Positions 2,311 to 36,284 of a stretch of DNA of 64,000 nt are shown in pieces; the first letter of the stretch is position 1; every line of letters starts with the position of its first letter. The position numbers and the translations under genes were made by a program. Location of the stretch: positions 620,001-684,000 of the forward strand of contig MCFH01000025.1 of assembly GCA_002104945.1 (NCBI GenBank). Reading direction: 5' to 3'. The stretch is from Piromyces finnis finn (Eukaryota > Fungi > Neocallimastigomycota). Below the pieces are notes generated by a model. The model was not told where the DNA came from. It saw only the letters and a list, made by a program, of their open reading frames with translations, and did no database searches.

Positions 2311-2468
2311 AATAAATACTTCTATTAAAAATTTTATTTGATTTATTGATTAAAAATATAAAAAATCATTTTATAAATATTTACATTTCTATTTTTATTT
2401 AATTTTTATTTTTATTTTATTATTTTTATTTTTGGTTTTTAAAAATATATTAAAAATTATATATTTTT

Positions 2469-3746: not shown

Positions 3747-4338
3747 AAAAAATTGATTTGCTAATATACTTATTTCAATTACATTTACATGATTTTTAAT
3801 TTTATTGTAATGAAATAATGGTTCATATAAAATATACCATTTTTAGCTATTTTTAATAAAATTTCAGGATTACAACCGTGATTTAATTCTTGATAAAATA
3901 ATTTTGTATTTGTTTCATAAGTCATATTGTTCAATTATTTTAAACAAACAAAATATATATATAATTTTACTAACAGTTGTTAAAAATATAAATTTTAAAA
4001 TTAATTTTTAATTATTACATATAAATAATATATACTGTAAATAAATTAAGTAAAAATCTGTAAATGTGAATTAACAATTTCTTATCAAATTTTAATTAAA
4101 TTTACAGATTAAAATATTTAATTTTTTAATTAATTCAATATTTTATAGAAAATAACAATTTAAATAAATCATTTTACAATATGATAAAAAAATTATTTTT
4201 AATAAAATTTTAATTTTTAAATTTAATAAAGTAAAAAATCACACATGTAAATCTTTATTATACTATTTTATAATATAATAAATAAATGTTAAAAATGATT
4301 TTTTATAATTTTAATAAAATGTTCAAATTTTATTTAAA

Positions 4339-5505: not shown

Positions 5506-5689
5506 TAATAATGGTAATAATAATAATAATAAACAAAATTATATTAGTCGTATTAATTTAAATGAAAATGTTGTTTGTTCAAGAAGTTCTAATAATTATA
5601 TAAGATTAGAAGATATGGTAAAACATTTTGTTCAAAATAGATTAAACATATCTCTTCAATCATGAGAATGATCCTTATCAACTGTAAAA

Positions 5690-6747
5690 ATATGGTCATT
5701 TTCAGAACTAGTAGTATGAGTATCTTTGGAATTTTTAGTAGTAGATTCGTTCATTGTATTAATTATATTGTGAGTATTTTCAAAAGATTTGAAAAATCCT
5801 TTTGTTGTACTTCCGTTAGTAGAATTTGACACAACAAGGGAATGAGCTTATTCGATAGATCTATTTTGTTCTTCTGCATATGTATCACCTTTAGTAATTG
5901 TTTCAAAGGCTGATTTATGATAAGATTGGCCATTTTTAAATTGTATCTTGAATTTCATCATTATATGAAATAGTGCATGGCATCGTTGAATCCTTATTGG
6001 AAAGCGATATGCATTCGACAAATTCGGATTTACTATCTTTTTTTACAATTCTTCATATAATTTTTTTATTACCACAGTATAAGGAATACACGTTGCTGTA
6101 ATTTTATCAAGTATTATATATGCCATCAATTTTAATTAAGGCATGAGGATATGGATTATAAGATGAATTATGTTGACTAGCTAAAGGAATACTTTTAAAA
6201 CCATTTTTAATAAAGTCTTCGTATACGTCTTTAATTTTAACTTCATATTCTTCAATTGTTCGGAAATTTAAAGATTGATATTTCATCGTCATTAGATGTA
6301 TTGGATTCTCCTTCACCCACACCTCTTTTTTCATAATTGGCATTTTCAATAATTTTATACTATTCATCAATATTATTAACCAATGTATTTTAACCACAGT
6401 AAGATATACCGAGCCAATTAAGTCCAATATATCTGGCATAATTTTCAATGTTATCAAAGTATATTATATTATTACTAGAATTAGTATTAGTATGGATCAA
6501 TTATTTTTGATCATACCACTATTAGTATAAACACAAAACTCTTTACTTGAACTACTTTCAATATTTCCAATATCTTCAATACCTTCAATATACTCTCAAT
6601 AGCTTTATTAAATTCAGTACTTTCAGTACACCTTCTGCAAATTCAATACTCTCTGATAAATTCAATACATTTAATGTCTCTAGTACAGATTTTGCATTAA
6701 TATTGGTTATATAACTAGTAATAAATAATTAATTGCTTTAATCACAT
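5690..6747 (-). pseudogene. Decayed paralog of the secreted protein at 1-2310
   Basis: Collinear fragments: KEFCVYTNSGMIK..DPY vs KREFCLYGYEGITRVVDPY; KSIPLASQHNSSYNPYPHALI vs KCIPLTSVNPAYNPYHNSLI; MPCTISYNDEIQDTI..NGQSYHKS vs ISCSIRVSNTIEDSV..NGNTYHQS. Many stops and frameshifts. Confidence 0.8.
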
Positions 6748-15237: not shown

Positions 15238-16470
15238 TATATAGATATTATTTATATTTATATTTTAAAGAAAAGGTTTATTAAAATATTGAAATATATT
15301 TATATATATATATAAAAAGATTGAATTCATATTTACATAGTATGAAGAATAGTAGAAAATAAAGAATAAGTAAAAAAAATGTTGACTTCATAATTTTTCA
15401 TGATAATACTTTTTTAAATAAAATATGTTTTTTTTTGGGGGGGATGCTATTCCTTTTTATTTTTTATATATACATAGGAAAAAAAACATATTTTTTTTTT
15501 TTTTTTGAATAAACGGAATATTTTAAATTACACTATAAATTATAATAGGTATTAAAAAAAATTATAAATACCAAATTTATAATTTTAAACTTTTTTTTTT
15601 TTTTTTATTTTTAAGTATATCAATTTTATTTTTTAATGGTACTTTAATGAACAAATCTTTATTTCTTATAAATGTTATAAATGAATCTTTTTTTTTTACC
15701 TTATAATAAAGATAAAAAAAAAATAAAATGGGTAAATAAAAGATGAAATAAAACTTTATACTCTATATATTTGAAAAAAAAAATCATACAATTATACTTT
15801 TTAAAGTTTTTTTTTATTCTACTATATTTTCATCTACCAAAGAGTAAAATGAGTATAAAAATAATTTTTATAATTATTTAATTTTAATAAATTATTATAT
15901 ATTAAAATGAAGGGTTCACTTTAATAAAAGAAGAGGAAAAAAATAATATCATATATATATATACAAAAAAAATATTATTTTCAGATGAGAAAAATATAGC
16001 ATATTTATTAAGTATTTTTTTTTTTTAGCCAAAAATTAATTATAAATTAGCTCTTTAAAATAACAAACTTTTTTTTTCTTAAGCTAATTATCAAGTTTCT
16101 TTTTAAATTTAAACATAATAAAAACCAGGATAAAAATCCAAAATCAGTATTCCTATATATTATTATTATTATCAAAACATTTTTAACCTATTCTAAAAAG
16201 TATATACCTAATATTTAAAACGGTTAGACTTGAACTTTTTAGCATTATAATTAATATTAATATTCATAGAATTATTAAAATTAGTATTAATAACATATCA
16301 TTTAAGTGTCAAATAAAGCTTTTCAAATCTTAAAGAATTAAAATGTTTTTTTTTGACAGCATTTTAAACCCTTTTATTTTTATAATATAGAATTTTATTT
16401 AAAAATAAATAAATTAAACCCAAATGAATAAAAAAAAGAGAGTCAAGTAATTAAAGAAAGAAAAAAAAAA

Positions 16471-16665
16471 TTTTAAAGACATCAAATATTTTTACACTTT
16501 ATTATAATACATGTTATAAAAAAAAATTAAAAATAAAAATAAAAAAAATATGTTTAAATAAATAGAAATTGGGTATAATGTATTCCAGTAATTTTAATTA
16601 AAGAAAGTCACTATTATACTAAAGTATAATAATTGTATTTGACTTTCAATGGGACACCGAACCAA
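16471..16665 (-). mobile_element. Older, diverged 3' UTR fragment of the same LINE family
   Basis: Aligns by eye to 16792-17015 with substitutions and deletions (aaagacatcaaatatt ... gggacaccgaaccaa). Confidence 0.85.
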
Positions 16666-19600
16666 GAAAGAAAGATTCATAATTGAAAATTTTTAAAATA
16701 AGAAAATTATATTGTTATTTATTATCATTAAATAACTATAATTGGTGAAGTATGAAATAATAATCCAATTTTTTTTTTTTTTTTTTTTTTTAACGGCATC
16801 AAATATTTTTACACTTTATTATTAATTTAATTAAAATTATAATACATGTAATAAAAAATTAAAAATAAATAAAAATAAAAAAAATATGTTTAAATAAACA
16901 CAAATGAATAAAAATTGGGTATAATGTATTCTAGTAATTTTAATTAAAGTAAGAAAGCCACTATCATACTAAAGTATAATAATTGTATTTGACTTCCAAT
17001 GGGACACCGAGCCAAAGATCAAAATTTTGTCATGGAACAAAATTATGATCTCCATTGGTTGCGCTGGCCCTCCTGGCCTGTCTTACTGTTTCTTCAGCAT
17101 TGACGCTCTTGGATGTTGCTTCAAATCTTTTGAACATTGACCATTGCTGGCCAATAGCAAAAGGCATGATTTTGGTTAGAAGTTCCGCGGTTACCGTCAA
17201 GAATGGTGTTCCTTCGTTAGTATCAGATTGAATCTGACGCTTACAAAGTTCTTTCCATTCCCTTGAATTGTAATTAATATTGTTAAAACTTCTTCCCCCA
17301 AGAAGGAATTTAAATATTTTACTGCACACACTAGAATAATCATACACATTAATATTCACCGGATTATTAGAACTATTACTATCATTAACTAAATTACTAT
17401 CTAAATTAGAATTATTATCTTCACTATTGCTAACATTACTAATATTATTATTTCTATTATTGTTATTATTACTATTGTTACTATTACTATTGTTACTATT
17501 ACTATTGTTACTATTACTATTGTAATTATTATTACTACTATTGTTACTATTACTATTAATGTTATTACTATCTCTACTGATATTATCAATTTCATTATTA
17601 TTGATAGGACTATTGGAATTACGTTGACTGAAAAAATTTAATAGCTGGACTATAGAATCATAATGTTTAATACGGATATCTCTAAATGTTGGACAATCTA
17701 ATAACCAATGTTTAATACTTTGATCTCCACACTTGCAACATGGACAGTAGTTAGGACAAACTGGATCAACAAATTTGGCAGCTTTGGCAACTCTAGCATC
17801 CAACTTGTATCCGCTTCTTGCTTTCAATAGCCAGTAGAAGCCATAGGCAAACTCTGGGTACTCATAACATAATTTAATAAAATCTTTAGTTTCAATAAAT
17901 TTATTATCATCATAATATTGCGCTTTGATTGAATTCCCTTTGAGATCTTTCCAATAAAAGTTTTTAATTGCTTTAATATCTCCATGCTTCTTTAGTTTTT
18001 TATCAAGTGTCCTACTTGATTTGCACCACGTGTATTTTCTAAATTTAGGAATGTAATTGACAAGGTGTGAGATAATACAATTTGAGTTTTTCCATTTGTT
18101 AAAACATCTAACCTGAGCTAACGCACATTTGGCTGACAATGGAGGAATATTCAAATCTTTTGAAATAGAGTATAAAGATATAAACGATACAGCTCTATGA
18201 ACTCCGGCAACCCATCGTATTCCTTTGTTAACATGCTTCTGAGCAATCCTAGACCTGGCTTTGTTGGATCCAAGTAATGGTGCAAAGTATGAAACTCTGC
18301 TAATCACTTGTGAGTTAAGTACTAGTTTTTTGAAGGGAATAGGAATATTAGGATTTCTTAAGAATTTACTGACTGAAAAAAGTCCTTTCAAAACCTTGTT
18401 ATTAAGAACTTTAATTACTGGTTTAAGGGACAGATTCTTATCAAATGGAACACCAAAATAAGTATAACAATCAGTAGTTGGAATGGGTTGTCCTGCTAAG
18501 TAAAATGTTGGATCTCTCTTGTTCTGATTTTCTATTGATTCAGGACGAATCACCATCGTTGAACACTTCTGGATACCAAATTCCATTTCATTATACAATG
18601 CCCATTCATTAACTCTTCTAAGCATCTTTTTTAAGCATCCTCTTGTTGGAGCACAAATAACTATATCATCTGCAAAAAGTCCACCACAGCATCGAGTGTC
18701 ACCTAAACTGACTCCTAGATCTTCGCACTCTCTAAATATATCATTAATAAAGAGATTAAAGAGAATAGGAGAAAGAGGGCAACCTTGACGGACTCCTTTC
18801 TTCACATCAAAAGATTTCGAGAATTGTCCATCTAATTTGACATTAGCCTTAGATGTTAAATATAAATTTTTGATAAATTGTAGACTCTTACCTCGGATTC
18901 CTAAACAATCTAATTTATGGAGAATATTACCGATTGGGACTGAATCGTATGCTTTCCTGAGATCTAAAAAGGCCAAATATGTCTCTTTATTATCTAATTG
19001 ACGTCTACGGCATATTTCTTGGATTGAAATGAAAAGACTAATACTTTCTTCCTTTTTTCGAAAACCAAATTGTTCAGGTCTAATGAAATTATTCTTTAAA
19101 CCATATTCTGAGATTCTAGTGGTGACAATTTTGGAAATCAACTTAATACCATTATTGATAAGTGATATACCTCGATAGTTATCACAATCTGTCAAATCTC
19201 CCTTCTTAGGAATAGAAACAATACTGGATTCATTCCATGAGTTGGGGAAATCTCCATCCCAAATACGGTTGAATAATTTAAGAATAAAATTTAAACCATG
19301 AGCATCATTATCTGAAGTGGTATTACCAGAAGAATTATTATCTGTAGCATTATTAGAATCATTACTTGATGGAACTAATGCTTTGTAAAATTCAATTGGA
19401 ATACCATCCGGACCTGATGCTTTATAATTTGGAGTAGTGAGGATAGCTGACTTGACTTCATCAATACTAATATCTTGGTTGATATCCCACTCATCAAGCA
19501 TAGGAAGTGAAAAACGTTTATTCGTTGGTTCTTCATACCAATGCTCCAAATCAAGACTTACACCACTTGGGTCTGATGCAAGATTTTCGAAATGATCATG

Positions 19601-22433
19601 CCACACATCTAGTTGTTCTTCCGTAGCAACAACTAATTCTCCATTTTTATTTTTAATTGGTTGAGCAATAAAGAAAGAATCTTTTCCAATTTTTGCAGTT
19701 TTCTTGATCCATTTCCAGGCCTTCTTAGGATTATGACTCTTCATATACTCACATCCTGTTTTAATCCAATGAAGATATTCTTGCTTCCTAAATTCATTAC
19801 ATCTTTTGTGGATGTAATCAATGAGTTTACGGTAGATTTTAATTCTTTTAATAAATTCATCTATATCATAAATTCTTTCTTTTTTAAAACTCTTATACAA
19901 CTTCATTTTGATTTTTTGAAGATTAAAAATTTGTTGTGAAATATGAAATGAAGACTTTATAACATTATTTGCTGAGGTAATACTGAGCTCGTCTGCAATT
20001 GAAAAAGCAGTTGAAGTAAACTCTTTGGAAAGTTCATCTGTAGAAACATTAGGATCGTTGGATTTTGCTGAAAGTATTTGGAATTTATTATGACTGAGAA
20101 TAGATTCCTTTTCCTCAATACATTTTAATCTATTCCATTTCAGAATTTTCTTAGGAACATTAAAGTCATTAGAAAAATCTTCCATAGGAATAATTTTACC
20201 ATTAATAAGAAGTGGCTTATGGTCTGATACAGGATAAAAATTATTTATAAATGATCCTGAGTGAATAAGATCTTTCATCTTCGAATTGATAAGAGCATGG
20301 TCAATGTCGGAAGATTGATCACCTCGAGTCCAAGAGATAGTAGACCCTCTAAGCGGAAGAATTTCCCAATCTCCTAATCCATTAGTTGATAACCAGTTGG
20401 ATAATTTTACTTTAGACATATTAAAATCACCAACAAGAATCGATGGATGGGATGAATGAGTTTGTAATCACAAGCGAACTTCTAACTTTGCATGATCAAC
20501 ATAGATGTTGTGATGACTATGAGGCATATAAACATTACCAATCGAGCATTTGAATCTATTCCAGAGACTAAAAGTATAAATAGAAATAATATACTTTCCA
20601 GAGAAGTTTTCAAGTGAGGCTTGACATGAATTGTGAAAACCTAAATATAAACCTCTCATTCCCGGAACTGATTCGTCAGCTTTCTTGAAAAAGTGTCTAT
20701 AGTTTCGCAAAGTAACACGACAAGGATAATCTGTATTCGATCCAGAACCATTACCAGTTTCTTGGAAACATAAAAATAATGGTTTGAAAATAGCTGTGAA
20801 ATAGCTAATACTATCTCTCTTTTCGTGATTCCACCCATTGGTGTTCCAACTAAGACAAAAAGAAAAGTTATCAGGCTTGTTGGATGAGGAAGAATCGTTG
20901 CTATTATTATTATTATTATTAAAGTCATCGTTATTAATGGATGATGCATCAGAGGAATAAGTAGAACTATTACTAGATGGCTGTGAAACTGAAGAACTAT
21001 CAACTATTGAACTGTTATCAGAGTTGATAGAGCTATTAGAATTAATTGTTGAATGTTGAGATTGAAATTGTGTTTGCTGTAGATCTGGAATATTTTCATG
21101 ATTGGAAACTTGTTGAAGATCTTGTTGAAGATCTAGTTGAAGATCGGATTGTTGATGAGATTGTTGAACTGATTGTTGAAATGATTGTTGAATAGAATGT
21201 TGATGTTTATTAGAAACTAAAATTTTACGTTTGAGAGTGGAAAAAGTGTATTTGTGATTCCTTCTACTACGAGCTGAAAAGGAAATTGAGGTAACTGAAA
21301 GTTTCTTCTTTAACATGTGTAAGATTTTAATACAATCTTTCGATGAACCATGAACCTTGACTAAGAAAAAGTGATCATTGAAAGTCTGAAAATATTTAAC
21401 ACTAATAACTGAATTAAATTTATCTTCTAGAATAACCTCGAGTTTTTCCCATAGCATATTTACTGACCATGATCGAATACCACGGATAAAGAAGGAGCGA
21501 ATATCATCTAAGGGGATACCATAAGACCGGGTACCACGTCTGATATAATTCTTGTCTTTAATATAAAGGACTGACATGATAATAAATTCTAATTAAAAAT
21601 ATTGAATATAAAATAAATACTAATAAAAATTATAAATATAACGTATATGGAAAAAAAAATCTGTCTCTCTCTCTCTTCTTAAAAGTACTGGATAGTACAA
21701 AAATTGTTACGATGCTTTGTTTAAAGTTTCTTTTTTTGAATTCTAGTTGTAAATTTTCTTTAAAAATTCTAGTTTTGGTTTGTTGTTAGTAAATTCGAAT
21801 CGCTTTTTGACACTAAACTTGTTTGACTTACTTTTCATTAAATATTTAAATTGGTAAAAAATTTGAATCAAGAATGTCGACACCAGAAAGCTTGTGAATA
21901 GTATTTTTACATGATGTAGAGTGAATCAGTCTCTTACAAGAAACAATACAACAATAGCTACATGAATATAAATTTTTTTTTTTTTTTTTTTTTTAACGGC
22001 ATCAAATATTTTAAACTTTATTATTAATTTAATTAAAATTATAATACATGTAATAAAAAATTAAAAAATAAAAATAAAAATAAAAAAAATATGTTTAAAT
22101 AAACACAAATGAATAAAATTTGGGTATAATGTATTCTAGTAATTTTAATTAAAGTAAGAAAGCCACTATCATACTAAAGTATAATAATTGTATTTGACTT
22201 CCAATGGGACACCGAGCCAAAGATCAAAATTTTGTCATGGAACAAAATTATGATCTCCATTGGTTGCGCTGGCCCTCCTGGCCTGTCTTACTGTTTCTTC
22301 AGCATTGACGCTCTTGGATGTTGCTTCAAACCTTTTGAACATTGTCCATTGCTGGCCAATAGCAAAAGGCATGATTTTGGTTAGAAGTTCCGCGGTTACC
22401 GTCAAGAATGGTGTTCCTTCGTTAGTATCAGAT

Positions 22434-22436
<3 letters not shown>

Positions 22437-22471
<35 letters not shown>

Positions 22472-24007
22472 GGCATCAAATATTTTAAACTTTATTATTA
22501 ATTTAATTAAAATTATAATACATGTAATATAATAATTAAAATAAAATAAAAATAAAAAAAAATATGTTTAAATAAACACAAATGAATAAAAATTGGGTAT
22601 AATGTATTCTAGTAATTTTAATTAAAGTAAGAAAGCCACTATCATTTCAACAATCCGATCTTGTTGAAGATCGGATTGTTGATGAGATTGTTGAACTGAT
22701 TGTTGAACTGATTGTTGAAATGATTGTTGAATAGAATGTTGATGTTTATTAGAAACTAAAATTTTACGTTTGAGAGTGGAAAAAGTGTATTTGTGATTCC
22801 TTCTACTACGAGCTGAAAAGGAAATTGAGGTAACTGAAAGTTTCTTCTTTAACATGTGTAAGATTTTAATACAATCTTTTGATGAACCATGAACCTTGAC
22901 TAAGAAAAAGTGATCATTGAAAGTTTGAAAATATTTAACACTAATAACTGAATTAAATTTATCTTCTAGAATAACCTCGAGTTTTTCCCATAGCATATTT
23001 ACTGACCATGATCGAATACCACGGATAAAGAAGGAGCGAATATCATCTAAGGGGATACCATAAGACCGGGTACCACGTCTGATATAATTCTTATCTTTAA
23101 TATAAAGGACTGACATGATAATAAATTCTAATTAAAAAATATTGAATATAAAATAAATACTAATAAAAATTACAAATATAACGTATATGGAAAAAAATCT
23201 GTCTCTCTCTCTCTTCTTAAAAGTACTGGATAGTACAAAAATTGTTACGATGCTTTGTTTAAAGTTTCTTTTTTTTGAATTCTAGTTGTAAATTTTCTTT
23301 AAAAATTCTAGTTTTGGTTTGTTGTTAGTAAATTCGATTCGCTTTTTGACACTAAACTTGTTTGACTTTACTTTTCATTAAATATTTAAATTGGTAAAAA
23401 ATTTGAATCAAGAATGTCGACACCAGAAAGCTTGTGAATAGTATTTTTACATGATGTAGAGTGAATCAGTCTCTTACAAGAAACAATACAACAATAGCTA
23501 CATGAATATAAAAGTACAATGCAAATGCTAAAGTTGACTACATTGGATTCTTACAAGAGAAGAGTAGTACTACATGAATACATGAATAAAAGAAAAAATA
23601 CAGCAACAAAATGTATTACTCTTCTAATTAAATACTATACAAACTTACCTGAAAAATCAAACATTCACTTATTCATCAAATACTTAAATTTGATGAATAA
23701 AATGTTTTTTAATCGCTCAGTACCATGAGCTTAGTCCTAATAATTTACCCTTGAAGACTAACCAAGCATCCATTGCGCAATGCTTGGATTTAATTCTTTC
23801 TACTCTCTCAGTACCATGAGCATGAGTAGACCCCCTTGAGAAATTACATTTATTAAATAAATGAAGGCACATTCCTAAGAGGGCACCAAGCATCCATTGC
23901 GCAATACTTGGATTTAATTTTTTCTACTCTCTCAGTACCATGAGCATGAGTAGACCCCCTTGAGAAACTACATTTATTAAATAAATGAAGGCACGTTCCC
24001 AAGAGGG
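22437..24007 (-). mobile_element. LINE copy B2, an internally deleted 1.57-kb derivative that keeps both ends, inserted in B1
   Basis: Poly(A) at 22437-22468; 13-bp TSD AGTATCAGATTGA at 22424-22436 and 24008-24020; the 3' UTR joins directly to the Gln-rich start of the ORF at about 22645. Confidence 0.9.
23762..24007 (-). repeat. Two ~124-bp tandem 5' UTR monomers of copy B2
   Basis: Units 23762-23885 and 23886-24007 (ccaagcatccattgcgcaat ... aagaggg). Confidence 0.95.
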
Positions 24008-24124
24008 AGTATCAGATTGAATCTGACGCTTACAAAGTTCTTTCCATTCCCTTGAATTGTAATTAATATTGTTAAAACTTCTTCCCCCAAGAAGGAATTT
24101 AAATATTTTACTGCACACACTAGA

Positions 24125-24170
<46 letters not shown>

Positions 24171-24406
24171 GGCATCAAATATTTTAAACTTTATTATTAA
24201 TTTAATTAAAATTATAATACATGTAATATAAAAATTAAAATAAAATAAAAATAAAAAAAAATATGTTTAAATAAACACAAATGAATAAAAATTGGGTATA
24301 ATGTATTCTAGTAATTTTAATTAAAGTAAGAAAGCCACTATCATACTAAAGTATAATAATTGTATTTGACTTCCAATGGGACACCGAGCCAAAGATCAAA
24401 ATTTTA

Positions 24407-27400
24407 TCATGGAACAAAATTATGATCTCCATTGGTTGCGCTGGCCCTCCTGGCCTGTCTTACTGTTTCTTCAGCATTGACGCTCTTGGATGTTGCTTCA
24501 AACCTTTTGAACATTGACCATTGCTGGCCAATAGCAAAAGGCATGATTTTGGTTAGAAGTTCCGCGGTTACCGTCAAGAATGGTGTTCCTTCATTAGTAC
24601 CAGATTGAATCTGACGCTTACAAAGTTCTTTCCATTCCCTTGAATTGTAATTAATATTGTTAAAACTTCTTCCCCCAAGAAGGAATTTAAATATTTTACT
24701 GCACACACTAGAATAATCATACACATTAATATTCACCGGATTATTAGAACTATTACTATCATTAACTAAATTACTATCTAAATTAGAATTATTATCTTCA
24801 CTATTGCTATCATTACTAATATTATTATTTCTATTACTACTATTGTTATTATTACTATTGTTACTATTACTATTGTTATTATTACTATTGTAATTATTAT
24901 TACTACTATTGTTACTATTACTATTAATGTTATTACTATCTCTACTGATATTATCAATTTCATTATTATTGATAGGACTATTGGAATTACGTTGACTGAA
25001 AAAATTTAATAGCTGGACTATAGAATCATAATGTTTAATACGGATATCTCTAAATGTTGGACAATCTAATAACCAATGTTTAATACTTTGATCTCCACAC
25101 TTGCAACATGGACAGTAGTTAGGACAAACTGGATCAACAAATTTGGCAGCTTTGGCAACTCTAGCATCCAACTTGTATCCGCTTCTTGCTTTCAATAGCC
25201 AGTAGAAGCCATAGGCAAACTCTGGGTACTCATAACATAATTTAATAAAATCTTTAGTATCAATAAACTTATTATCATCATAATATTGCGCTTTGATTGA
25301 ATTCCCTTTGAGATCTTTCCAATAAAAGTTTTTAACTGCTTTAACATCTCCATGTTTCTTTAGTTTTTTATCAAGTGTCCTACTTGATTTGCACCACGTG
25401 TATTTTCTAAATTTAGGAATGTAATTGACAAGGTGTGAGATAATACAATTTGAGTTTTTCCATTTGTTAAAACATCTAACCTGAGCTAATGCACATTTGG
25501 CTGACAATGGAGGAATATTCAAATCTTTTGAGATAGAGTATAAAGATATAAACGATACAGCTTTATGAACTCCGGCAACCCATCGTATTCCTTTGTTAAC
25601 ATGCTTCTGTGCAATTCTAGACCTGGCTTTGTTGGATCCAAGTAATGGTGCAAAGTATGAAACTCTGCTAATCACTTGTGAGTTAAGTACTAGCTTTTTG
25701 AAGGGAATAGGAATATTAGGATTTCTTAAGAATTTACTGACTGAAAAAAGCCCTTTCAAAACCTTGTTATTAAGAGCTTTAATAACTGGTTTAAGGGACA
25801 GATTCTTATCAAATGGAACACCAAGATAAGTATAACAATCAGTAGTTGGAATGGGTTGTCCTGCTAAGTAAAATGTTGGATCTCTCTTGTTCTGATTTTC
25901 TATTGATTCAGGACGAATCACCATCGTTGAACACTTCTGGATACCAAATTCCATTTCATTATACAAGGCCCATTCATTAACTCTTCTAAGCATCTTTTTT
26001 AAGCATCCTCTTGTTGGAGCACAAATAACTATATCATCTGCAAAAAGTCCACCACAGCATCGAGTGTCACCTAAACTGACTCCGAGATCTTCACACTCTT
26101 TAAATATATCATTAATAAAGAGATTAAAGAGAATAGGAGAAAGAGGGCATCCTTGACGGACTCCTTTCTTCACATCAAAAGATTTCGAGAATTGTCCATC
26201 TAATTTGACATTAGCCTTAGATGTTAAATATAAATTTTTGATGAATTGTAAACTCTTACCTCGGATTCCTAAACAATCTAATTTATGGAGAATATTACCG
26301 ATTGGGACTGAATCGTATGCTTTCCTGAGATCTAAAAAGGCCAAATATGTCTCTTTATTATCTAATTGACGTCTACGGCATATTTCTTGGATTGAAATGA
26401 AAAGACTGATACTTTCTTCCTTTTTTCGAAAACCAAATTGTTCAGGTCTAATGAAATTATTCTTTAGACCATATTCTGAGATTCTAGTGGTGACAATTTT
26501 GGAAATCAACTTAATACCATTATTGATAAGTGATATACCTCGATAGTTATCACAATCTGTCAAATCTCCCTTCTTAGGAATAGAAACAATACTGGATTCA
26601 TTCCATGAGTTGGGGAAGTCTCCATCCCAAATACGGTTGAATAATTTAAGAATAAAATTTAAACCATAAGCATCATTATCTGAAGTGGTATTACCGGAAG
26701 AATTATTATCTGTAGCATTATTAGAATCATTACTTGATGGAATTAATGCTTTGTAAAATTCAATTGGAATACCATCCGGACCTGATGCTTTATAATTTGG
26801 AGTAGAGAGGATAGCTGACTTGACTTCATCAATACTAATATCTTGGTTGATATCCCATTCATCAAGCATAGGGAGTGAAAAACGTTTATTCGTTGGTTCT
26901 TCATACCAATGCTCCAAATCAAGACTTACACCACTTGGATCTGATGCAAGCTTTTCGAAATGATCATGCCACACATCTAGTTGTTCTTCCGTAGCAACAA
27001 CTAATTCTCCATTTTTATTTTTAATTGGTTGAGCAATAAAGAAAGAATCTTTTCCAATTTTTGCAGTTTTCTTGATCCATTTCCAGGCCTTCTTAGGATT
27101 ATGACTTTTCATATACTCACATCCTGTTTTAATCCAATGAAGATATTCTTGTTTCCTAAATTCATTACATCTTTTGTGGATGTAATCAATGAGCTTACGG
27201 TAGATTTTAATTCTTTTAATAAATTCATCTATATCATAAATTCTTTCTTTTTTAAATCTCTTATACAACTTCATTTTGATTTTTTGGAGATTAAAAATTT
27301 GTTGTGAAATATGAAATGAAGACTTTATAACATTATTTGCTGAGGTAATACTGAGCTCGTCTGCAATTGAAAAAGCAGTTGAAGTAAATTCTTTGGAAAG

Positions 27401-28942
27401 TTCATCTGTAGAAACATTAGGATCGTTGAATTTTGCTGAAAGTATTTGGAATTTATTATGACTGAGAATAGATTCCTTTTCCTCAATACATTTTAATCTA
27501 TTCCATTTCAGAATTTTCTTAGGAACGTTAAAGTCATTAGAAAAATCATCCATAGGAATAATTTTACCATTAATAAGAAGTGGCTTATGGTCTGATACAG
27601 GATAAAAATTATTTATAAATGATCCTGAGTGAATAAGATCTTTCATCTTCGAATTGATAAGAGCATGGTCAATGTCGGAAGATTGATCACCTCGAGTCCA
27701 AGAGATAGTAGACCCTCTAAGCGGAAGAATTTCCCAATCTCCTAATCCATTAGTTGATAACCAGTTGGATAATTTTACTTTAGACATATTAAAATCACCA
27801 ACAAGAATCGATGGATGGGATGAATGAGTTTGTAACCACAAGCGAACTTCTAACTTTGCATGATCAACATAGATGTTGTGATGACTATGAGGCATATAAA
27901 CATTTCCAATCGAGCATTTGAATCTATTCCAGAGACTAAAAGTATAAATAGAAATAATATACTTTCCAGAGAAGTTTTCAAGTGAGGCTTGACACGAATT
28001 GTGAAAACCTAAATATAAACCTCTCATTCCCGGAACTGATTCGTCAGCTTTCTTGAAAAAGTGTCTATAGTTTCGCAAAGTAACACGACAAGGATAATCT
28101 GTATTCGAACCAGAACCATTACCAGTTTCTTGGAAACATAAGAATAATGGTTTGAAAATAGCTGTGAAATAGCTAATACTATCCCTCTTTTCATGATTCC
28201 ACCCATTGGTGTTCCAACTAAGACAAAAAGAAAAGTTATCAGGCTTGTTGGATGAGGAAGAATCGTTGCTATTATTATTATTATTAAAGTCATCGTTATT
28301 AATGGATGATGCATCAGAGGAATAAGTAGAACTATTACTAGATGGCTGTGAAACTGAAGAACTATCAACTATTGAACTGTTATCAGAGTTGATAGAACTA
28401 TTAGAATTAATTGTTGAATGTTGAGATTGAAATTGTGTTTGCTGTAGATCTGGAATATTTTCATGATGGGAAACTTGTTGAAGATCCTGTTGAAGATCTT
28501 GTTGAAGATCGGATTGTTGATGAGATTGTTGAACTGATTGTTGAAATGATTGTTGAATAGAATGTTGATGTTTATTAGAAACTAAAATTTTACGTTTGAG
28601 AGTGGAAAAAGTGTATTTGTGATTCCTTCTACTACGAGCTGAAAAGGAAATTGAGGTAACTGAAAGTTTCTTCTTTAACATGTGTAAGATTTTAATACAA
28701 TCTTTTGATGAACCATGAACCTTGACTAAGAAAAAGTGATCATTGAAAGTTTGAAAATATTTAACACTAATAACTGAATTAAATTTATCTTCTAGAATAA
28801 CCTCGAGTTTTTCCCATAGCATATTTACTGACCATGATCGAATACCACGGATAAAGAAGGAGCGAATATCATCTAAGGGGATACCATAAGACCGGGTACC
28901 ACGTCTGATATAATTCTTATCTTTAATATAAAGGACTGACAT
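24407..28942 (-). CDS. Non-LTR retrotransposon polyprotein, 1511 aa: N-terminal extension, AP endonuclease, reverse transcriptase, CCHC knuckle
   Basis: APE motifs SWNTNG, FQET, GNVY, VGDFN, IDH, SDH; RT motifs YRGISL, QFGFR, FLDLRKAYDSV, GVRQGCPLSP, LFADD; C-x2-C-x8-H-x4-C in CPCCKCGDQSIKHWLLDC. Confidence 0.97.
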   Translation of the reverse strand: MSVLYIKDKNYIRRGTRSYGIPLDDIRSFFIRGIRSWSVNMLWEKLEVILEDKFNSVISVKYFQTFNDHFFLVKVHGSSKDCIKILHMLKKKLSVTSISFSARSRRNHKYTFSTLKRKILVSNKHQHSIQQSFQQSVQQSHQQSDLQQDLQQDLQQVSHHENIPDLQQTQFQSQHSTINSNSSINSDNSSIVDSSSVSQPSSNSSTYSSDASSINNDDFNNNNNSNDSSSSNKPDNFSFCLSWNTNGWNHEKRDSISYFTAIFKPLFLCFQETGNGSGSNTDYPCRVTLRNYRHFFKKADESVPGMRGLYLGFHNSCQASLENFSGKYIISIYTFSLWNRFKCSIGNVYMPHSHHNIYVDHAKLEVRLWLQTHSSHPSILVGDFNMSKVKLSNWLSTNGLGDWEILPLRGSTISWTRGDQSSDIDHALINSKMKDLIHSGSFINNFYPVSDHKPLLINGKIIPMDDFSNDFNVPKKILKWNRLKCIEEKESILSHNKFQILSAKFNDPNVSTDELSKEFTSTAFSIADELSITSANNVIKSSFHISQQIFNLQKIKMKLYKRFKKERIYDIDEFIKRIKIYRKLIDYIHKRCNEFRKQEYLHWIKTGCEYMKSHNPKKAWKWIKKTAKIGKDSFFIAQPIKNKNGELVVATEEQLDVWHDHFEKLASDPSGVSLDLEHWYEEPTNKRFSLPMLDEWDINQDISIDEVKSAILSTPNYKASGPDGIPIEFYKALIPSSNDSNNATDNNSSGNTTSDNDAYGLNFILKLFNRIWDGDFPNSWNESSIVSIPKKGDLTDCDNYRGISLINNGIKLISKIVTTRISEYGLKNNFIRPEQFGFRKKEESISLFISIQEICRRRQLDNKETYLAFLDLRKAYDSVPIGNILHKLDCLGIRGKSLQFIKNLYLTSKANVKLDGQFSKSFDVKKGVRQGCPLSPILFNLFINDIFKECEDLGVSLGDTRCCGGLFADDIVICAPTRGCLKKMLRRVNEWALYNEMEFGIQKCSTMVIRPESIENQNKRDPTFYLAGQPIPTTDCYTYLGVPFDKNLSLKPVIKALNNKVLKGLFSVSKFLRNPNIPIPFKKLVLNSQVISRVSYFAPLLGSNKARSRIAQKHVNKGIRWVAGVHKAVSFISLYSISKDLNIPPLSAKCALAQVRCFNKWKNSNCIISHLVNYIPKFRKYTWCKSSRTLDKKLKKHGDVKAVKNFYWKDLKGNSIKAQYYDDNKFIDTKDFIKLCYEYPEFAYGFYWLLKARSGYKLDARVAKAAKFVDPVCPNYCPCCKCGDQSIKHWLLDCPTFRDIRIKHYDSIVQLLNFFSQRNSNSPINNNEIDNISRDSNNINSNSNNSSNNNYNSNNNNSNSNNSNNNNSSNRNNNISNDSNSEDNNSNLDSNLVNDSNSSNNPVNINVYDYSSVCSKIFKFLLGGRSFNNINYNSREWKELCKRQIQSGTNEGTPFLTVTAELLTKIMPFAIGQQWSMFKRFEATSKSVNAEETVRQARRASATNGDHNFVP

Positions 28943-29565
28943 GATAATAAATTCTAATTAAAAAATATTGAATATAAAATAAATACTAATAAAAATTACA
29001 AATATAACGTATATGGAAAAAAATCTGTCTCTCTCTCTCTTCTTAAAAGTACTGGATAGTACAAAAATTGTTACGATGCTTTGTTTAAAGTTTCTTTTTT
29101 TTGAATTCTAGTTGTAAATTTTCTTTAAAAATTCTAGTTTTGGTTTGTTGTTAGTAAATTCGATTCGCTTTTTGACACTAAACTTGTTTGACTTTACTTT
29201 TCATTAAATATTTAAATTGGTAAAAAATTTGAATCAAGAATGTCGACACCAGAAAGCTTGTGAATAGTATTTTTACATGATGTAGAGTGAATCAGTCTCT
29301 TACAAGAAACAATACAACAATAGCTACAATGCTAAAGTTGACTACATTGGATTCTTACAAGAGAAGAGTAGTACTACATGAATACATGAATAAAAGAAAA
29401 AATACAGCAACAAAATGTATTACTCTTCTAATTAAATACTATACAAACTTACCTGAAAAATCAAACATTCACTTATTCATCAAATACTTAAATTTGATGA
29501 ATAAAATGTTTTTTAATCGCTCAGTACCATGAGCTTAGTCCTAATAATTTACCCTTGAAGACTAA

Positions 29566-29905
29566 CCAAGCATCCATTGCGCAATGCTTGGATTTAATTC
29601 TTTCTACTCTCTCAGTACCATGAGCATGAGTAGACCCCCTTGAGAAATTACATTTATTAAATAAATGAAGGCACATTCCTAAGAGGGCACCAAGCATCCA
29701 TTGCGCAATACTTGGATTTAATTCTTTCTACTCTCTCAGTACCATGAGCATGAGTAGACCCCCTTGAGAAACTACATTTATTAAATAAATGAAGGCACGT
29801 TCCCAAGAGGGGAAATTCTTTCTACTCTCTCAGTACCATGAGCATGAGTAGACCCCCTTGAGAAACTACATTTATTAAATAAATGAAGGCACGTTCCCAA
29901 GAGGG
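29566..29905 (-). repeat. Two full and one partial 5' UTR monomer of copy C
   Basis: Units 29566-29689, 29690-29811 and about 29814-29905. Confidence 0.95.
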
Positions 29906-29990
29906 CACACTAGAATAATCATACACATTAAACATGAATATAAAAATACAATGCAAATGCTAAAGTTGACTACATTGGATTCTTACAAGA

Positions 29991-29996
<6 letters not shown>

Positions 29997-30038
<42 letters not shown>

Positions 30039-31604
30039 GGCATCAAATATTTTAAACTTTATTATTAATTTAATTAAAATTATAATACATGTAATAAAAA
30101 ATTAAAAATAAATAAAAATAAAAAAAAATATGTTTAAATAAACACAAATGAATAAAAATTGGGTATAATGTATTCTAGTAATTTTAATTAAAGTAAGAAA
30201 GCCACTATCATACTAAAGTATAATAATTGTATTTGACTTCCAATGGGACACCGAGCCAAAGATCAAAATTTTGTCATGGAACAAAATTATGATCTCCATT
30301 GGTTGCGCTGGCCCTCCTGGCCTGTCTTACTGTTTCTTCAGCATTGACGCTCTTGGATGTTGCTTCAAACCTTTTTGAACATTGACCATTGCTGGCCAAT
30401 AGCAAAAGGCATGATTTTGGTTAGAAGTTCCGCGGTTACCGTCAAGAATGGTGCTCCTTCATTAGTACCAGATTGAATCTGACGCTTACAAAGTTCTTTC
30501 CATTCCCTTGAATTATAATTAATATTGTTAAAACTTCTTCCCCCAAGAAGGAATTTAAATATTTTACTGCACACACTAGAATAATCATACACATTAATAT
30601 TCACCGGATTATTAGAACTATTACTATCATTAACTAAATTACTATCTAAATTAGAATTATTATCTTCACTATTGCTATCATTATTAATATTATTATTTCT
30701 ATTACTACTATTGTTATTATTACTATTTCTATTATTACAATTACTACTATTGTTATTATTACTATTGTTATTATTATTATTGTTACTATTACTATTACTG
30801 TTATTGCTATCTCTACTGACATTATCAATTTCATTATTATTGATAGGACTATTGGAATTACGTTGACTGAAAAAATTTAATAGCTGGACTATGGAATCAT
30901 AATGTTTAATACGGATATCTCTAAATGTTGAACAATCTAATAACCAATGTTTAATACTTTGATCTCCACACTTGCAACATGGACAGTAGTTAGGACAAAC
31001 TGGATCAACAAATTTAGCAGCTTTGGCAACTCTAGCATCCAACTTATATCCGCTTCTTGCTTTCAATAGCCAGTAGAAGCCATAGGCAAACTCTAGGTAC
31101 TCATAACATAATTTAATAAAATCTTTAGTTTCAATAAATTTATTATCATCATAATATTGCGCTTTGATTGAATTCCCTTTGAGATCTTTCCAATAAAAGT
31201 TTTTAACTGCTTTAACATCTCCATGCTTCTTTAGTTTTTTTTCAAGTGTCCTACTTGATTTGCACCACGTGTATTTTCTAAATTTAGGAATGTAATTGAC
31301 AAGGTGTGAGATAATACAATTTGAGTTTTTCCATTTGTTAAAACATCTAACCTGAGCTAACGCACATTTGGCTGACAGTGGAGGAATATTCAAATCTTTT
31401 GAGATAGAGTATAAAGATATAAACGATACAGCTTTATGAACTCCGGCAACCCATCGTATTCCTTTGTTAACATGCTTCTGAGCAATCCTAGACCTAGCTT
31501 TGTTGGATCCAAGTAATGGTGCAAAGTATGAAACTCTGCTAATCACTTGTGAGTTAAGTACTAGTTTTTTGAAAGGAATAGGAATATTAGGATTTCTTAA
31601 GAAT
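29997..31604 (-). mobile_element. LINE copy D, 5'-truncated (1.6 kb), inserted in the 5' UTR of A
   Basis: Poly(A) at 29997-30035; 14-bp TSD TTACAAGAGGAGAG at 29983-29996 and 31605-31618, with TTAC also matching the element (microhomology). Both TSD copies carry GAGGAG where copies B2 and C have GAGAAG. Confidence 0.9.
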
Positions 31605-32730
31605 TTACAAGAGGAGAGTAGTACTACATGAATACATGAATAAAAGAAAAAATACAGCAACAAAATGTATTACTCTTCTAATTAAATACTATACAAACTT
31701 ACCTGAATATCAAACATTCAACTTATTCATCAAATACTTAATTCGATGAATAAAATGTTTTTTAATCGCTCAGTACCATGAGCTTAGTCCTAATAATTTT
31801 CCCTTAAAGACTAACCAAGCATCCATTGCGCAATGCTTGGATTTAATTATTATCTTCACTATTGCGAATTTACTCTTAACCTTTTTGATGGTATTACATA
31901 GATTTTGGAAATCCATAAACCACAATAAAATTCACCAATCAATAGCCATCACTACCACCTTTTTTTTTAAACACCAGATAATATTAAAACACATTTTTTT
32001 ATTTTTTTATATATATAAATTATTTTATTAAAATATATTATTTTATTATTAAAACATTTAAAAAAATAATAGCAAACTTTAAAATGGAGTTGCAACTATT
32101 ATTTTCAATCAATATGGATTAGTTTTTTTTTTTTTTTTCGTTATTAGTTTCATTAATTTTTTTTTTCTTTTTTTAAATAGGATTTCTATGTTTTCTCTTT
32201 GTTTTTAGTTGTGTGTGTGTATTTTGATTTTTTTTCATGTCTTTTAAATGAAAAATGTTTTATAATAAAATGAATATATTCATTTTTTTAAAAAAATAAT
32301 AAAAAAAATTTTCTATAATTTGTTTTTTTATATTATTTTTGGCTTGTTTGTTTTCATTTTCTAAATGTAATGATTTTAAAATAAATTAAAAAAATAATAA
32401 TAGGAATTTTGATTTCTTTTTTTTTTTTGTGTATGATCTAATTATAAAAAAAATGATTAAATTTGGATTTTTATAATACAAAAAATTTTTCTATAATTTT
32501 ATAGAACATTAATTATTTAATGTGTTGTAAAATGTTTTTTAAATTAAAAAATTAAAAAAAGAAAAATATAAATTTAATTATTTTTCTTTTTTCTTATTCT
32601 TAATCTTGGGTAAATATATAATTATTGGGTAACTTTATTCTTTTCCATGTCTAAAAAGAATAATAATTTTATATTAAAATAGATAAATTATATATATTAA
32701 AAAAGATAATAATGATTATTCGCGATTAAT

Positions 32731-34122
32731 TTAGTGGACAATTCTAGTTCTGACAACATCTTGAAGTTGAGAAAGTTCAGAGTAAACCTTTAATAATTCT
32801 TCTTCAGAGTTGACAGTAATATCAGCTTGAAGGTAAGCCATGGAACCACGAGCCTTAGAGACTTGGTTTTCAATGTTGTGAGAGTAGAGAATGTGGTTGA
32901 TAGCCTTAAGAACACCTGGAACATTCTTGTGGAAGTTTAAGATTCTGATAACATTAGTAGCAGATGGAACTTCAGTACTTGGAACTTGAGCAAAGTTAAC
33001 AGCACCAACAGTTTCACCACAGTTAATGTACTTGACAAGACGGTTAGCAACTTCAGTACCAATGTTGTATTGAGCTTCTTCAGTAGAACCACCAATGTGT
33101 GGGGTAAGGATAGTGTTTGGACAGTTTTGTAATGGGGTAATCCAACCTTCACAGTTACCCTTTGGTTCGTTGGTGTAGACATCAACAGCACAACCACCAA
33201 GGTGACCACTCTTTAAGGCTTCAACTAATGGTTCTAATTGAACAATGGTACCTCTGGAGGTGTTGATAAGACAACATCCCTTCTTCATCATAGCAATTTG
33301 TTCCTTACCAATCATACCATCAGTAGATGGAAGAGATGGAACGTGGAAGGTAATGAAATCAGAAGTCTTTAATAAAGTTTCAAGTTTGTCAACTTGGGTA
33401 GCACTACCAACTGGTGGAACCTTGTGGTAATCGTGGTAGATAACTCTGCATCCTAAAGCTTCAGCCATTTCAGAAACTTGTCTACCAATGTTACCGTAAC
33501 CAACAATACCTAAGGTACGTCCTCTGATTTCGTGACAACCCTTAGCAAATTTGTTCCAGATAGTCTTGTGCATTTCATTGTTACGGTCACCAACTCTACG
33601 ACCAACATTGAGCATAAGAGTGATAACTAATTCAGCAACGGAACGACCACTACCTCTTGGACAGTTGTAAACTGGAATACCGAGTTGAGAAGCCATTTCA
33701 AGATCGACACCATTGGTACCAATACAGAAACAACCAATAGCGATAAGGTTCTTAGCAGCAGCAAGAACCTTCTTGTTAATCTTAGTCTTAGATCTAACAC
33801 CAAGAATGTGAACATCCTTAATCTTTTCAATTAATTGTTCTTCAGAGAGAGACTTGGCACTCCATTCAATGTTGTAACCTTGAGCCTTTAAAATTTCAAC
33901 AGCAGAGTTGTTGATGTTTTCTAATAATAAAACCTTCATATCCTTGGAGGAGTTGAATGGACGGTATGGCTTTAAAGAACGGTGAGAAGAGTATTCAGCT
34001 TGCCAGAAAGTGTTAGAATCGAGTGGACCTAATCCTGGAATGTGTGGAAAACCTCCAGCATCAGAATCAACATCATTTAAACCGACTTCAGAAGCCTTTG
34101 GTAAATTTTGTGGAGTAGACAT
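32731..34122 (-). CDS. SER3: D-3-phosphoglycerate dehydrogenase (SerA / yeast Ser3-Ser33 type) with C-terminal ACT domain
   Basis: MKVLLLEN, GVRSKT, GCFCIGTN, GIVGYGNIG (NAD-binding), INTSRG, AVDVY..EP, LTPHIGGSTEEAQ, NFHKNVPGVL; intronless, with strongly biased codon use. Confidence 0.95.
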   Translation of the reverse strand: MSTPQNLPKASEVGLNDVDSDAGGFPHIPGLGPLDSNTFWQAEYSSHRSLKPYRPFNSSKDMKVLLLENINNSAVEILKAQGYNIEWSAKSLSEEQLIEKIKDVHILGVRSKTKINKKVLAAAKNLIAIGCFCIGTNGVDLEMASQLGIPVYNCPRGSGRSVAELVITLMLNVGRRVGDRNNEMHKTIWNKFAKGCHEIRGRTLGIVGYGNIGRQVSEMAEALGCRVIYHDYHKVPPVGSATQVDKLETLLKTSDFITFHVPSLPSTDGMIGKEQIAMMKKGCCLINTSRGTIVQLEPLVEALKSGHLGGCAVDVYTNEPKGNCEGWITPLQNCPNTILTPHIGGSTEEAQYNIGTEVANRLVKYINCGETVGAVNFAQVPSTEVPSATNVIRILNFHKNVPGVLKAINHILYSHNIENQVSKARGSMAYLQADITVNSEEELLKVYSELSQLQDVVRTRIVH

Positions 34123-36284
34123 ATTGGTATATTTAAACTATTATTAAAATAAATAAAAAAATTAAATAAAAATTTAATTTATTATAAAATTGAGGTTTTG
34201 CTTTTCCTTTTAAAAAATAAAAAGGTTGTTAATTAAAAAAATAAATAAAAGTAGTGTGAAGAAAAAAAAATTTTTTTTAAAGGATTTCAATATTTATTTA
34301 TATTAAAATTTTTTTATTCCAAAATTTTATTGAATAAGAATGGCATTTAAAATAAATGGCTTACATATAATAATATAATAAAAATTATATATTAGTCTAT
34401 ATATGCAATAATAAATTATTTTGAAAAATGACATTAATAAAAAATAATTATGATATCATAAAAAATTTCCTTCATAACAATTTTAAGATGCTATTTAATG
34501 AGGAAATATATTAAAAGTTTATTTTATCATATATTATAATATAATTTGATATATTATTGAATTTATTTTTAATTTATGTTACAACTACAAAATAGACTTT
34601 TTTATTAAAATATGGTAATATATAAAATCTATTGATGAAAAATCAATTTTATAAAATAAATAATAATATATATTCTGTATATATTGTAATATAAATCATT
34701 ATATATTAATAATATATAAATTAATTTATTCTTTGTTGTGATTTTTGGAAAGTAAAAATAGAAGGTTTTAGATGAAAATAAAAAAGGCAGAAGAGGAGTC
34801 AGGAAGTTGCATGAAAAGCTGGCTTTTTTTTTTTAATATGAAAAAAGCCAACTTTTATTAGGCTTATTTCTTTCATTCCTACATTAAAGACATGGCAATG
34901 AAAAAGAAAGTAATATTCAAAACTTTAGGCATACTACACCTTAATTATCATTTATTTGTATTTTTTTTTAGTAATCCCTAAAAAAAAAGATTGTGACAGA
35001 GAAACTTTGTATTAATAAATGAATAAATAAATAAACAAATAAATATTATAATAATAATTAAATGTATGAATAATTAATAATTTTAATAAATAAGAATGTC
35101 TCTTTCTATTTTAATAATAGATCATGACAAATTTAATTTGAAATCATTCACGAAACCGACGATTTTAGTTGAAATTGATCTAAAAAAGAAAGACACCCAC
35201 ACACACGCAAACACAGATATGCCTTTTTTTAAAAAAAAAAAATAAAATAAAATTCTTACTTTTTATTTTTCAAGAACAAATAAATTCATCTTTTTTCTCA
35301 CACACCTCCAACTAGCAATGATTTTTAAGGCTTTATTAAAAAGAATGTAGCATCATCCTAAAAAGAGTCATCATTCTAAAAGGAATAAATTTAGTCAAGG
35401 ACGAAGGGAAGGAAGAAAAGAAGGAAGGAGTGTGTGAAAAGGACAATAAAAATGGAAAATGTTAATAAACATACATTCATTGACATCGCGATTTCCTTTT
35501 TCCATCATCAATAAATAAATAAATAATTAATTAATAAATTAAATAAATTTATTTTAATAAATAAATGAATAAATAAATTAGTAAATAAATAAATTAATAA
35601 ATAAAAAGCTTCCTTCCGTTGATTAAAAGCAATAGTTTAATCCCAACCAAACAAAAAATTTGTAAAGGTAAATTAATGGTTTTAAAAAATTCACCATAAA
35701 AAAGGGTATTTTTGATCGGTTGATATATAAATATCCATACTATAATTGTTTTTCACTTTATAAATCATCAAAATTACCATATAAATTTATAAAGTTGCCA
35801 TAGATTGGCTATTTTTATGGTTAAATAAAAAGTTGAACAAATCAAAATCCATAAAAATATTAAAATTTTCAAGAAATTTATGTATTTATTCCATTATAAA
35901 TGCTAAAAATATATAAAAAAATTTAATTTAAAATATACAAAAATTTAATTTATATGGAAAGAAATAAATAATAAATGGAATTATTTAGATATTTTCTATA
36001 AATTTTTAATAATTTATGGAAATTTATGATTTTTTATGGTAAATTATCAATAATTTGCCATATAAAATCAAAAAGGTTCAATTTCTTACAAATCAACTAA
36101 AAAAAGTTTATATGGAAAAAGTCAAATCCACTCCTCCTACATATTAGAAAGGAAGGAAAGTAAAAGGAAGGAAAGTGAATGTCATTTTAATAAATAGGAC
36201 ATTTATAAAATAAAGACTATGAAAACAATAAAATAAAAAGTAATATAATGATAAAGAAATATAAATGTTTATTAAATTATATAA

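Follow-up and report, generated by a model that had tools for sequence, protein, structure and literature searches.

How does one retrotransposon family come to lie inside itself four times, always in the same orientation? This question is raised by a 15-kb block of long interspersed nuclear element (LINE) sequence in a 64,000-nucleotide stretch of the Piromyces finnis genome (assembly GCA_002104945.1, contig MCFH01000025.1, positions 620,001 to 684,000 of the forward strand), which was analyzed as a whole and is called the window below. The original prediction, made from this sequence, described a nest of four same-orientation insertions and explained it by a self-targeting retroelement that homes to its own copies by recognizing them. 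We found the nest to be as described, and across the genome the same element landed in LINEs far above its abundance, kept their orientation and built arrays; recognition of its own copies fitted the landings poorly. We propose instead, with a probability of roughly 0.6, that the pile was formed by successive insertions whose aim is set by a polar cue that persists at the pile's 5′ boundary or upstream of it.

The nest was mapped by self-comparison of the window between 14 and 34 kb, by a BLAST search of the window with the longest copy and by direct reading of the junctions, and these approaches agreed. The window is very AT-rich (15–33% GC), and the block consists, without remainder, of five copies of one L1-like LINE, designated A, B1, B2, C and D. 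All five are on the minus strand, and their poly(A) tails appear as poly(T) at the left. Copy C (24128–29905) is full length at 5778 nt, carries an intact open reading frame (ORF) of 1511 amino acids and serves as reference; element positions given below refer to it. The outermost copy, A, is found in three pieces: its 3′ 5.2 kb at 16769–21972 (98.3% identity to C over 5199 nt, junction read; poly(A) at 16769–16791, read as T), 65 nt of its 5′ untranslated region (UTR) at 29932–29996 (97% identity to the homologous B2 segment 23500–23565), and its first 247 nt, beginning at reference position ~304, at 31605–31851 (96.4% identity to C 29355–29602), which form the front edge of the pile. The ORF of A is broken into parts of 1129 and 369 amino acids. 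No recognizable target-site duplication (TSD) was found at the ends of A (16769 and 31851).

Each of the other four copies is bounded by a TSD of its own at exact coordinates. B1, a 5′-truncated 3′ fragment of 585 nt, was inserted into A between copies of ACATGAATATAAA (21960–21972 and from 29932). D (29997–31604), a 5′-truncated copy of 1.6 kb that spans reference positions ~4170–5778 with 97.2% identity to C over 1619 nt, was inserted into the same host between copies of the 14-bp TTACAAGAGGAGAG (from 29983 and from 31605); the 65-nt piece of A carries one copy of each duplication. B1 in turn received two insertions. B2 (22437–24007) lies between copies of the 13-bp AGTATCAGATTGA (22424–22436 and from 24008); its segments 22437–22645 and 22657–24007 align, respectively, to the 3′ end of C and to its 5′ region, and B2 kept the exact 5′ terminus and has a 4.1-kb internal deletion. 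C itself lies between copies of CACACTAGAATA (from 24116 and from 29906). The remaining pieces of B1 are its 3′ part at 21973–22436 (BLAST against C, junction read), 120 nt at 24008–24127 flanked by AGTATCAGATTGA and CACACTAGAATA (99.2% identity to C 24596–24715) and its 5′ edge at 29906–29931, where the junction consists of the 12-nt TSD of C plus 14 nt of B1; therefore, C sits 14–26 nt inside the 5′ edge of B1. Additional occurrences of the TSD strings are the equivalent internal positions of other copies, as expected. B2 and C share an identical 5′ starting nucleotide (CCCTCTTGGG...). The two insertion sites in the 5′ UTR of A are ~40–50 bp apart and the two in B1 108 bp apart, close to the ~50 bp and ~100 bp that had been estimated.

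BLAST of C against the window revealed no further copies of the family, in agreement with the claim that no other young copy was present in the rest of it. An older, diverged 3′ end of a related LINE, E (16466–16687, minus strand, 78% identity to reference positions 5492–5729), lies 81 bp past the poly(A) of A in the same orientation. Besides, ~20 nt directly upstream of the 5′ edge of A (31852–31871) match family positions 5099–5119, a hint that an even older fragment precedes the pile.

An apparent nest of this kind might also be produced by repeat collapse or misjoining during assembly. The block is highly repetitive, and elsewhere in the assembly head-to-head LINE marker pairs at the extreme ends of two small contigs, C21 (1119–1826) and C54 (341–1740), would overlap and resemble palindromes created by the assembly; of 216 adjacent marker pairs, 4 are opposite-strand neighbors, and these pairs belong to them. 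However, the four TSD pairs in the window are distinct, which, as had been argued, speaks against a collapse. In addition, the copies differ from one another by 0.5–3% and in their truncation points, and the block is therefore not a collapsed repeat. A nested architecture like that of the window was also found at more than 15 other loci, and an assembly origin is hardly credible.

The domain content of the element points to an APE-type L1-like non-long-terminal-repeat retrotransposon with a single ORF. In the ORF of C (24407–28942, minus strand), Pfam scans detected a reverse transcriptase domain (PF00078, 1.2e-35, amino acids 788–1043), for which the best solved relative was human L1 ORF2p (4.9e-33), and an APE endonuclease domain (PF03372, amino acids 241–452; 32.2 bits against a cut-off of 24.5 when scanned as a piece). 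A putative C-terminal CCHC zinc knuckle scored below its cut-off (zf-RVT, 19 bits against 27.5), with the Cys/His cluster CPNYCPCCKCGDQSIKHWLLDCP readable in the translation. No separate ORF1 was present; the first 240 amino acids of the single ORF are of low complexity and had no Pfam match. Single-ORF LINEs exist, and the missing ORF1 hence does not exclude an L1-like class. The closest database relatives were metagenome proteins; LINE proteins from Orpinomyces, Neocallimastix and Batrachochytrium came next. In its 5′ region, C contains repeats of 94, 124 and 124 nt (29564–29905). Other hallmarks of LINEs were also present, namely tails of 9–57 A, variable 5′ truncation (B1, D and many other loci) and TSDs of 9–15 bp that differ in sequence.

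We surveyed the family in the whole assembly (56.46 Mb, 232 contigs). The exact 26-nt junction of 3′ end and tail occurred 505 times, and internal 26-mers at reference positions 1172, 2901 and 4420 were found in 341, 376 and 497 copies, respectively (up to 2 mismatches). Approximately two thirds of copies reach position 1172 and are near full length, and the family totals ~2.4 Mb, or ~4% of the genome. At least 16 other copies in the genome match the 3′ 481 nt of C with 100% identity. The original prediction had proposed to score 3′ junctions for landings in the family itself, with orientation, against its abundance. This was done for the first 100 of the 505 junctions in contig order, which were not ranked by quality and 94 of which were unique, by comparing the flank past the tail with C; junctions that arose by later tandem duplication with identical flanks were scored once. 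The newcomer had landed in its own family in the same orientation in 39 of 94 cases and in the opposite orientation in 1. Own-family landings thereby made up ~43% of junctions (40/94), and landings in LINEs of any kind ~59% (56/94), as compared with a genome share of only ~4%. Over all LINE-targeted junctions the ratio of same to opposite orientation was 55:1.

Marker maps of entire piles showed head-to-tail stacks with the longest members upstream. Junctions and piles were found at many places in the interior of single contigs, e.g., at 0.86, 1.18 and 1.53 Mb of the 2.6-Mb contig C1, which contains at least three piles together with ~20 single copies. Including the four in the window, 11 LINE-in-LINE insertions were verified by TSDs, all in the same orientation; the other seven (two at locus L007 and one each at L012, L024, L029, L039 and L050) show both junctions and duplicate 11–15 bp of host sequence. 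Tandem duplication was also seen. At L014/L015 (C1:1537881–1552176), at least three tandem 942-bp units each contain a 5′-truncated copy (position 4797 to tail) and one identical 10-bp TSD; they are the product of tandem duplication after insertion, not of repeated insertion, and the entire block was duplicated again ~11 kb away.

What keeps the orientation? Regional polarity, such as replication direction, was rejected as a cause: adjacent junctions less than 10 kb apart were on the same strand in 29 pairs and on opposite strands in none, whereas the numbers were 12:9 at 10–50 kb and 11:9 at 50–200 kb, i.e., orientation was random past 10 kb. An endonuclease motif or strand composition could not provide the lock either. 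The nick context amounted to a weak A|T with nearly no information, and the base composition of the element is strand-symmetric (34.4% A, 34.1% T). Another candidate is filtering of random insertions, in which genic insertions and unstable inverted nests are lost and same-orientation nests remain as safe havens. Genes are densely packed in this genome, the intergenic background is very AT-rich, and nested transposon clusters that arise by filtering are common in other genomes. However, the 55:1 ratio was observed for copies that are mostly 97–100% identical to the active subfamily, and very short newcomers (18–65 nt plus tail) were likewise co-oriented with their hosts. Filtering also leaves unexplained the position of newcomers at the front edge of the host, described below, and we regard it as very improbable.

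A second LINE family provided further information. Among the 54 junctions outside the family, 16 had flanks that encode a sister LINE (tblastn, relatives of the element), and all 16 were in the same orientation; 6 of them begin inside a sister copy and 10 begin 72–400 nt upstream of one. The sister family shares 31–54% amino acid identity with the element and only patchy nucleotide identity (67–73%). These hosts would form no recombinogenic inverted repeat with the newcomer and still gave 16:0, which again argues against filtering. The sister family is abundant and is itself stacked as 5′-truncated copies (flanks in L003, L012, L014, L039, L045, L064 and others); its proteins are closest to P0022, and its 3′ terminus resembles that of the element (..AAATATTTGATGTC..).

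The sister hosts also bear on the explanation originally offered for the nest, that a protein or RNA of the element recognizes its own copies by their sequence, RNA or chromatin. The large own-family share (40 of 94 junctions for ~4% of the genome) is what such recognition would produce. However, hosts without usable nucleotide homology were targeted with the same polarity, and landing was independent of host sequence. Landing sites within hosts ranged over reference positions 88–5471, and therefore there is no single landing pad. In some cases the newcomer had entered non-LINE DNA 34–150 bp upstream of a copy. Moreover, the nick site has no motif, the element is strand-symmetric in composition, and chromatin marks alone would not provide polarity. 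Two local features count for recognition of own copies. The 124-nt unit of the 5′ repeat contains a hot segment of 18 nt (TCAAGGGGGTCTACTCATGCTCATGG), ~50 nt past the exact 5′ terminus of the unit (C 29564–29905; L013, L014, L050, L059), and 5–6 of 7 landings in this repeat fell at unit offsets 45–62. Besides, position 5298 was used twice independently, in the window and at L036. With these features considered, self-recognition appears unlikely as the general cause, though the least unlikely of the alternatives to a positional cue.

A further possibility is that no targeted nicking takes place, and that nascent cDNA pairs with a resident copy homologous to it, or that the reverse transcriptase jumps from one RNA to the poly(A) end of another. 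Either process would yield strict same orientation and landings over the whole element, and several arrays, such as those at L062 and L010, have the appearance of plain head-to-tail runs of 5′-truncated copies with short out-of-place patches and internal deletions. At L010 and L069 (C57:547350–547390), short patches of the element stand out of place at the 5′ ends of copies; one is a 25-nt re-copy of positions 8–32 ahead of a full 5′ end, and others of 27–34 nt come from further upstream. Stuttering or jumping of the reverse transcriptase could have produced such patches. However, the four insertions in the window and the seven elsewhere have host duplications and a host that continues on both sides; the newcomers B2 and C have a full 5′ terminus inside a host of only 585 nt, and sister-family hosts supply no homology. 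The run-like arrays are equally well explained if newcomers landed right at the edge of their predecessors. We consider this explanation improbable, somewhat more so than self-recognition.

Where both sides of an insertion were visible, the newcomer was found at the front edge of the host, 0–300 bp inside it or tens of bp upstream, irrespective of where the host was truncated and of the sequence present there. In the window, D lies 233–247 bp and B1 285–298 bp from the 5′ edge of A, and B2 lies 122–134 bp and C 14–26 bp from that of B1. At L007, two newcomers were inserted ~20 nt and 14–25 nt inside truncated hosts, at L024 the distance is 0–11 nt, at L050 it is ~280 nt, and at L039 the newcomer lies ~270 nt inside a sister-family host. 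At L036/L037, L062 and L013, each copy directly adjoins the truncated front of the following one or lies 7–139 nt upstream of a full-length 5′ end. In the window and at L007, L036/L037, L050 and L062, all newcomers were within 0–430 bp of the pile front and in the same orientation. Within full-length hosts, 10 landings were at positions 88–590 and none at 590–1826. The landing-free interval (window 28080–29316 in C) covers the last part of the 5′ UTR together with the N-terminal, low-complexity portion of the coding region, and is carried by all near-full-length copies. In addition, the 5′-terminal motif of the element was present within 172 nt in 14 of 99 flanks in sense and in none in antisense.

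These observations suggest the following scenario, to which the probability given at the outset applies. The pile was made by a young and abundant L1-like LINE in successive events of target-primed reverse transcription. Each newcomer produced a 12–14 bp target duplication, took the orientation of the resident copy and entered 14–300 bp from its 5′ edge; A itself sits 81 bp upstream of the older fragment E. Across the genome, the element stacks in the same manner, always head-to-tail, at the front edge of its own or sister copies, slightly inside this edge or some tens of bp upstream. We infer that the guiding cue is polar and persistent and resides at or upstream of the 5′ boundary. Because it would be left intact by each insertion, the next newcomer would be aimed into the front of the previous copy, and nesting would be a by-product of the cue rather than of self-recognition. 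A candidate for the cue is transcription that enters from an upstream gene. It is possible, and we suggest it only tentatively, that this APE-type LINE chooses its target, irrespective of sequence, by a polar positional cue at the upstream boundary of earlier insertions, such as the place where transcription of an expressed upstream gene runs out, with self-nesting similar to that of Cnl1 and Zepp (discussed below) as the by-product of hitting one genomic spot repeatedly.

In favor of the scenario, an AT-rich spacer of 879 bp (31852–32730) separates the pile from the stop codon of a D-3-phosphoglycerate-dehydrogenase-like gene (2-Hacid_dh and ACT; 32731–34122, minus strand; PF02826, 1e-50; PF00389, 7e-34), which is on the same strand as the pile. 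Of the words of 31852–34200, 75–85% occur in four sequencing runs, whose RNA nature is a guess. A 12-mer, AAAAAGGTGGTA, is common to two pile fronts and in pile orientation at both, 108 nt upstream of the front in the window (31953–31964, minus strand) and 66 nt upstream at L007 (C1:862909–862920, minus strand).

Several results weigh against this scenario. Approximately 40% of junctions fall in non-LINE AT-rich DNA, in which no common feature was seen. Host 5′ edges are visible in ~15 cases, and the front-edge rule is based on these and not on most of the 39 own-family junctions. No motif was shared by the eight visible upstream flanks, and AAAAAGGTGGTA was rejected as a cue: it has 24 genomic copies as compared with 29 for the reversed control, its other copies on the contigs covered are not near a LINE, and its presence at two pile fronts is probably a coincidence. 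The idea that piles sit behind highly expressed genes was also rejected; among six histone and ubiquitin-family genes, on contigs with complete LINE marker lists, one had a same-strand LINE behind it (at 1–2.6 kb), which is not significant. The hot offsets 45–62 in the 5′ repeat also belong here and indicate, therefore, a local preference on top of the positional rule. Together with the recurrent sites (position 5298 and the pair 3742/3745), they point to some preference at the level of sequence or structure besides position.

Positional and polar targeting by an adjacent landmark is known from TRE5 and TRE3 of Dictyostelium, which are directed by TFIIIC/IIIB to sites ~50 bp upstream of tRNA genes (PMC3159450), and there, too, repeated hits can pile up. 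The element described here resembles them in its fixed orientation and near-fixed position. Unlike in Dictyostelium, no landmark of this type was found: the window contained no tRNA genes (ARAGORN) and no Rfam families, relaxed Rfam scans of the pile-front spacer (excluding 32016–32060) returned nothing relevant, and a tRNA or other RNA gene was rejected as the cue within this scope.

The original prediction had also set the behavior apart from that of rDNA-, tRNA- or telomere-specific elements. To regard it as different from everything known would be wrong: the LINEs Cnl1 of Cryptococcus neoformans and Zepp of green algae form the same tandem nested arrays, and the behavior is therefore of a known kind. 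Cnl1, a LINE-1 element, shows a polarity lock resembling the one reported here, as 26 of 27 insertions in the 5′ UTR of a reporter gene followed the direction of transcription (bioRxiv 10.1101/2021.08.11.455996). However, Cnl1 arrays are subtelomeric, whereas in P. finnis, which belongs to a different fungal phylum, piles and single copies are scattered in contig interiors and 40% of junctions lie outside LINEs. Zepp and ZeppL, LINEs of the L1 clade, form clusters of nested elements (PMC3446292). Unlike the many dispersed piles found here, Zepp is found in a single cluster on each chromosome, a putative centromere, or at termini; in P. finnis, moreover, about two thirds of copies are near full length and a sister family is targeted as well. 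The likeness to Cnl1 and Zepp is one of nesting behavior: enrichment and tandem orientation were observed, and confinement to subtelomeres or centromeres was not. Head-to-tail, single-orientation LINE arrays are also formed by the telomeric elements HeT-A, TART and TAHRE of Drosophila, but these join chromosome ends without target duplications, while the insertions described here are internal, duplicate 11–15 bp and interrupt resident copies.

Zepp was reportedly described in 1997 and Cnl1 in 2001, and to our knowledge it has never been explained why they nest in themselves in one orientation. Self-nesting of LINEs is already known, and what differs here are the dispersed piles, the large sample, the targeting with the same polarity of a sister family of unrelated sequence, and the front edge of the host as the target. 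This fungus offers a far larger natural data set, with ~500 young copies in dozens of dispersed piles, and its sister family acts as an internal control for sequence homology. The sample argues against homology, an endonuclease motif, regional replication polarity and loss of inverted repeats as causes, and points to the 5′ boundary of resident copies as the place of the cue, which gives a testable handle on an old and unexplained behavior. If true, targeting by a positional cue would represent, for L1-like elements, a new way of choosing integration sites. Once identified, the cue would account for the coexistence of a highly active LINE with a compact genome, and for the origin of those LINE arrays that have elsewhere turned into centromeres or telomere caps.

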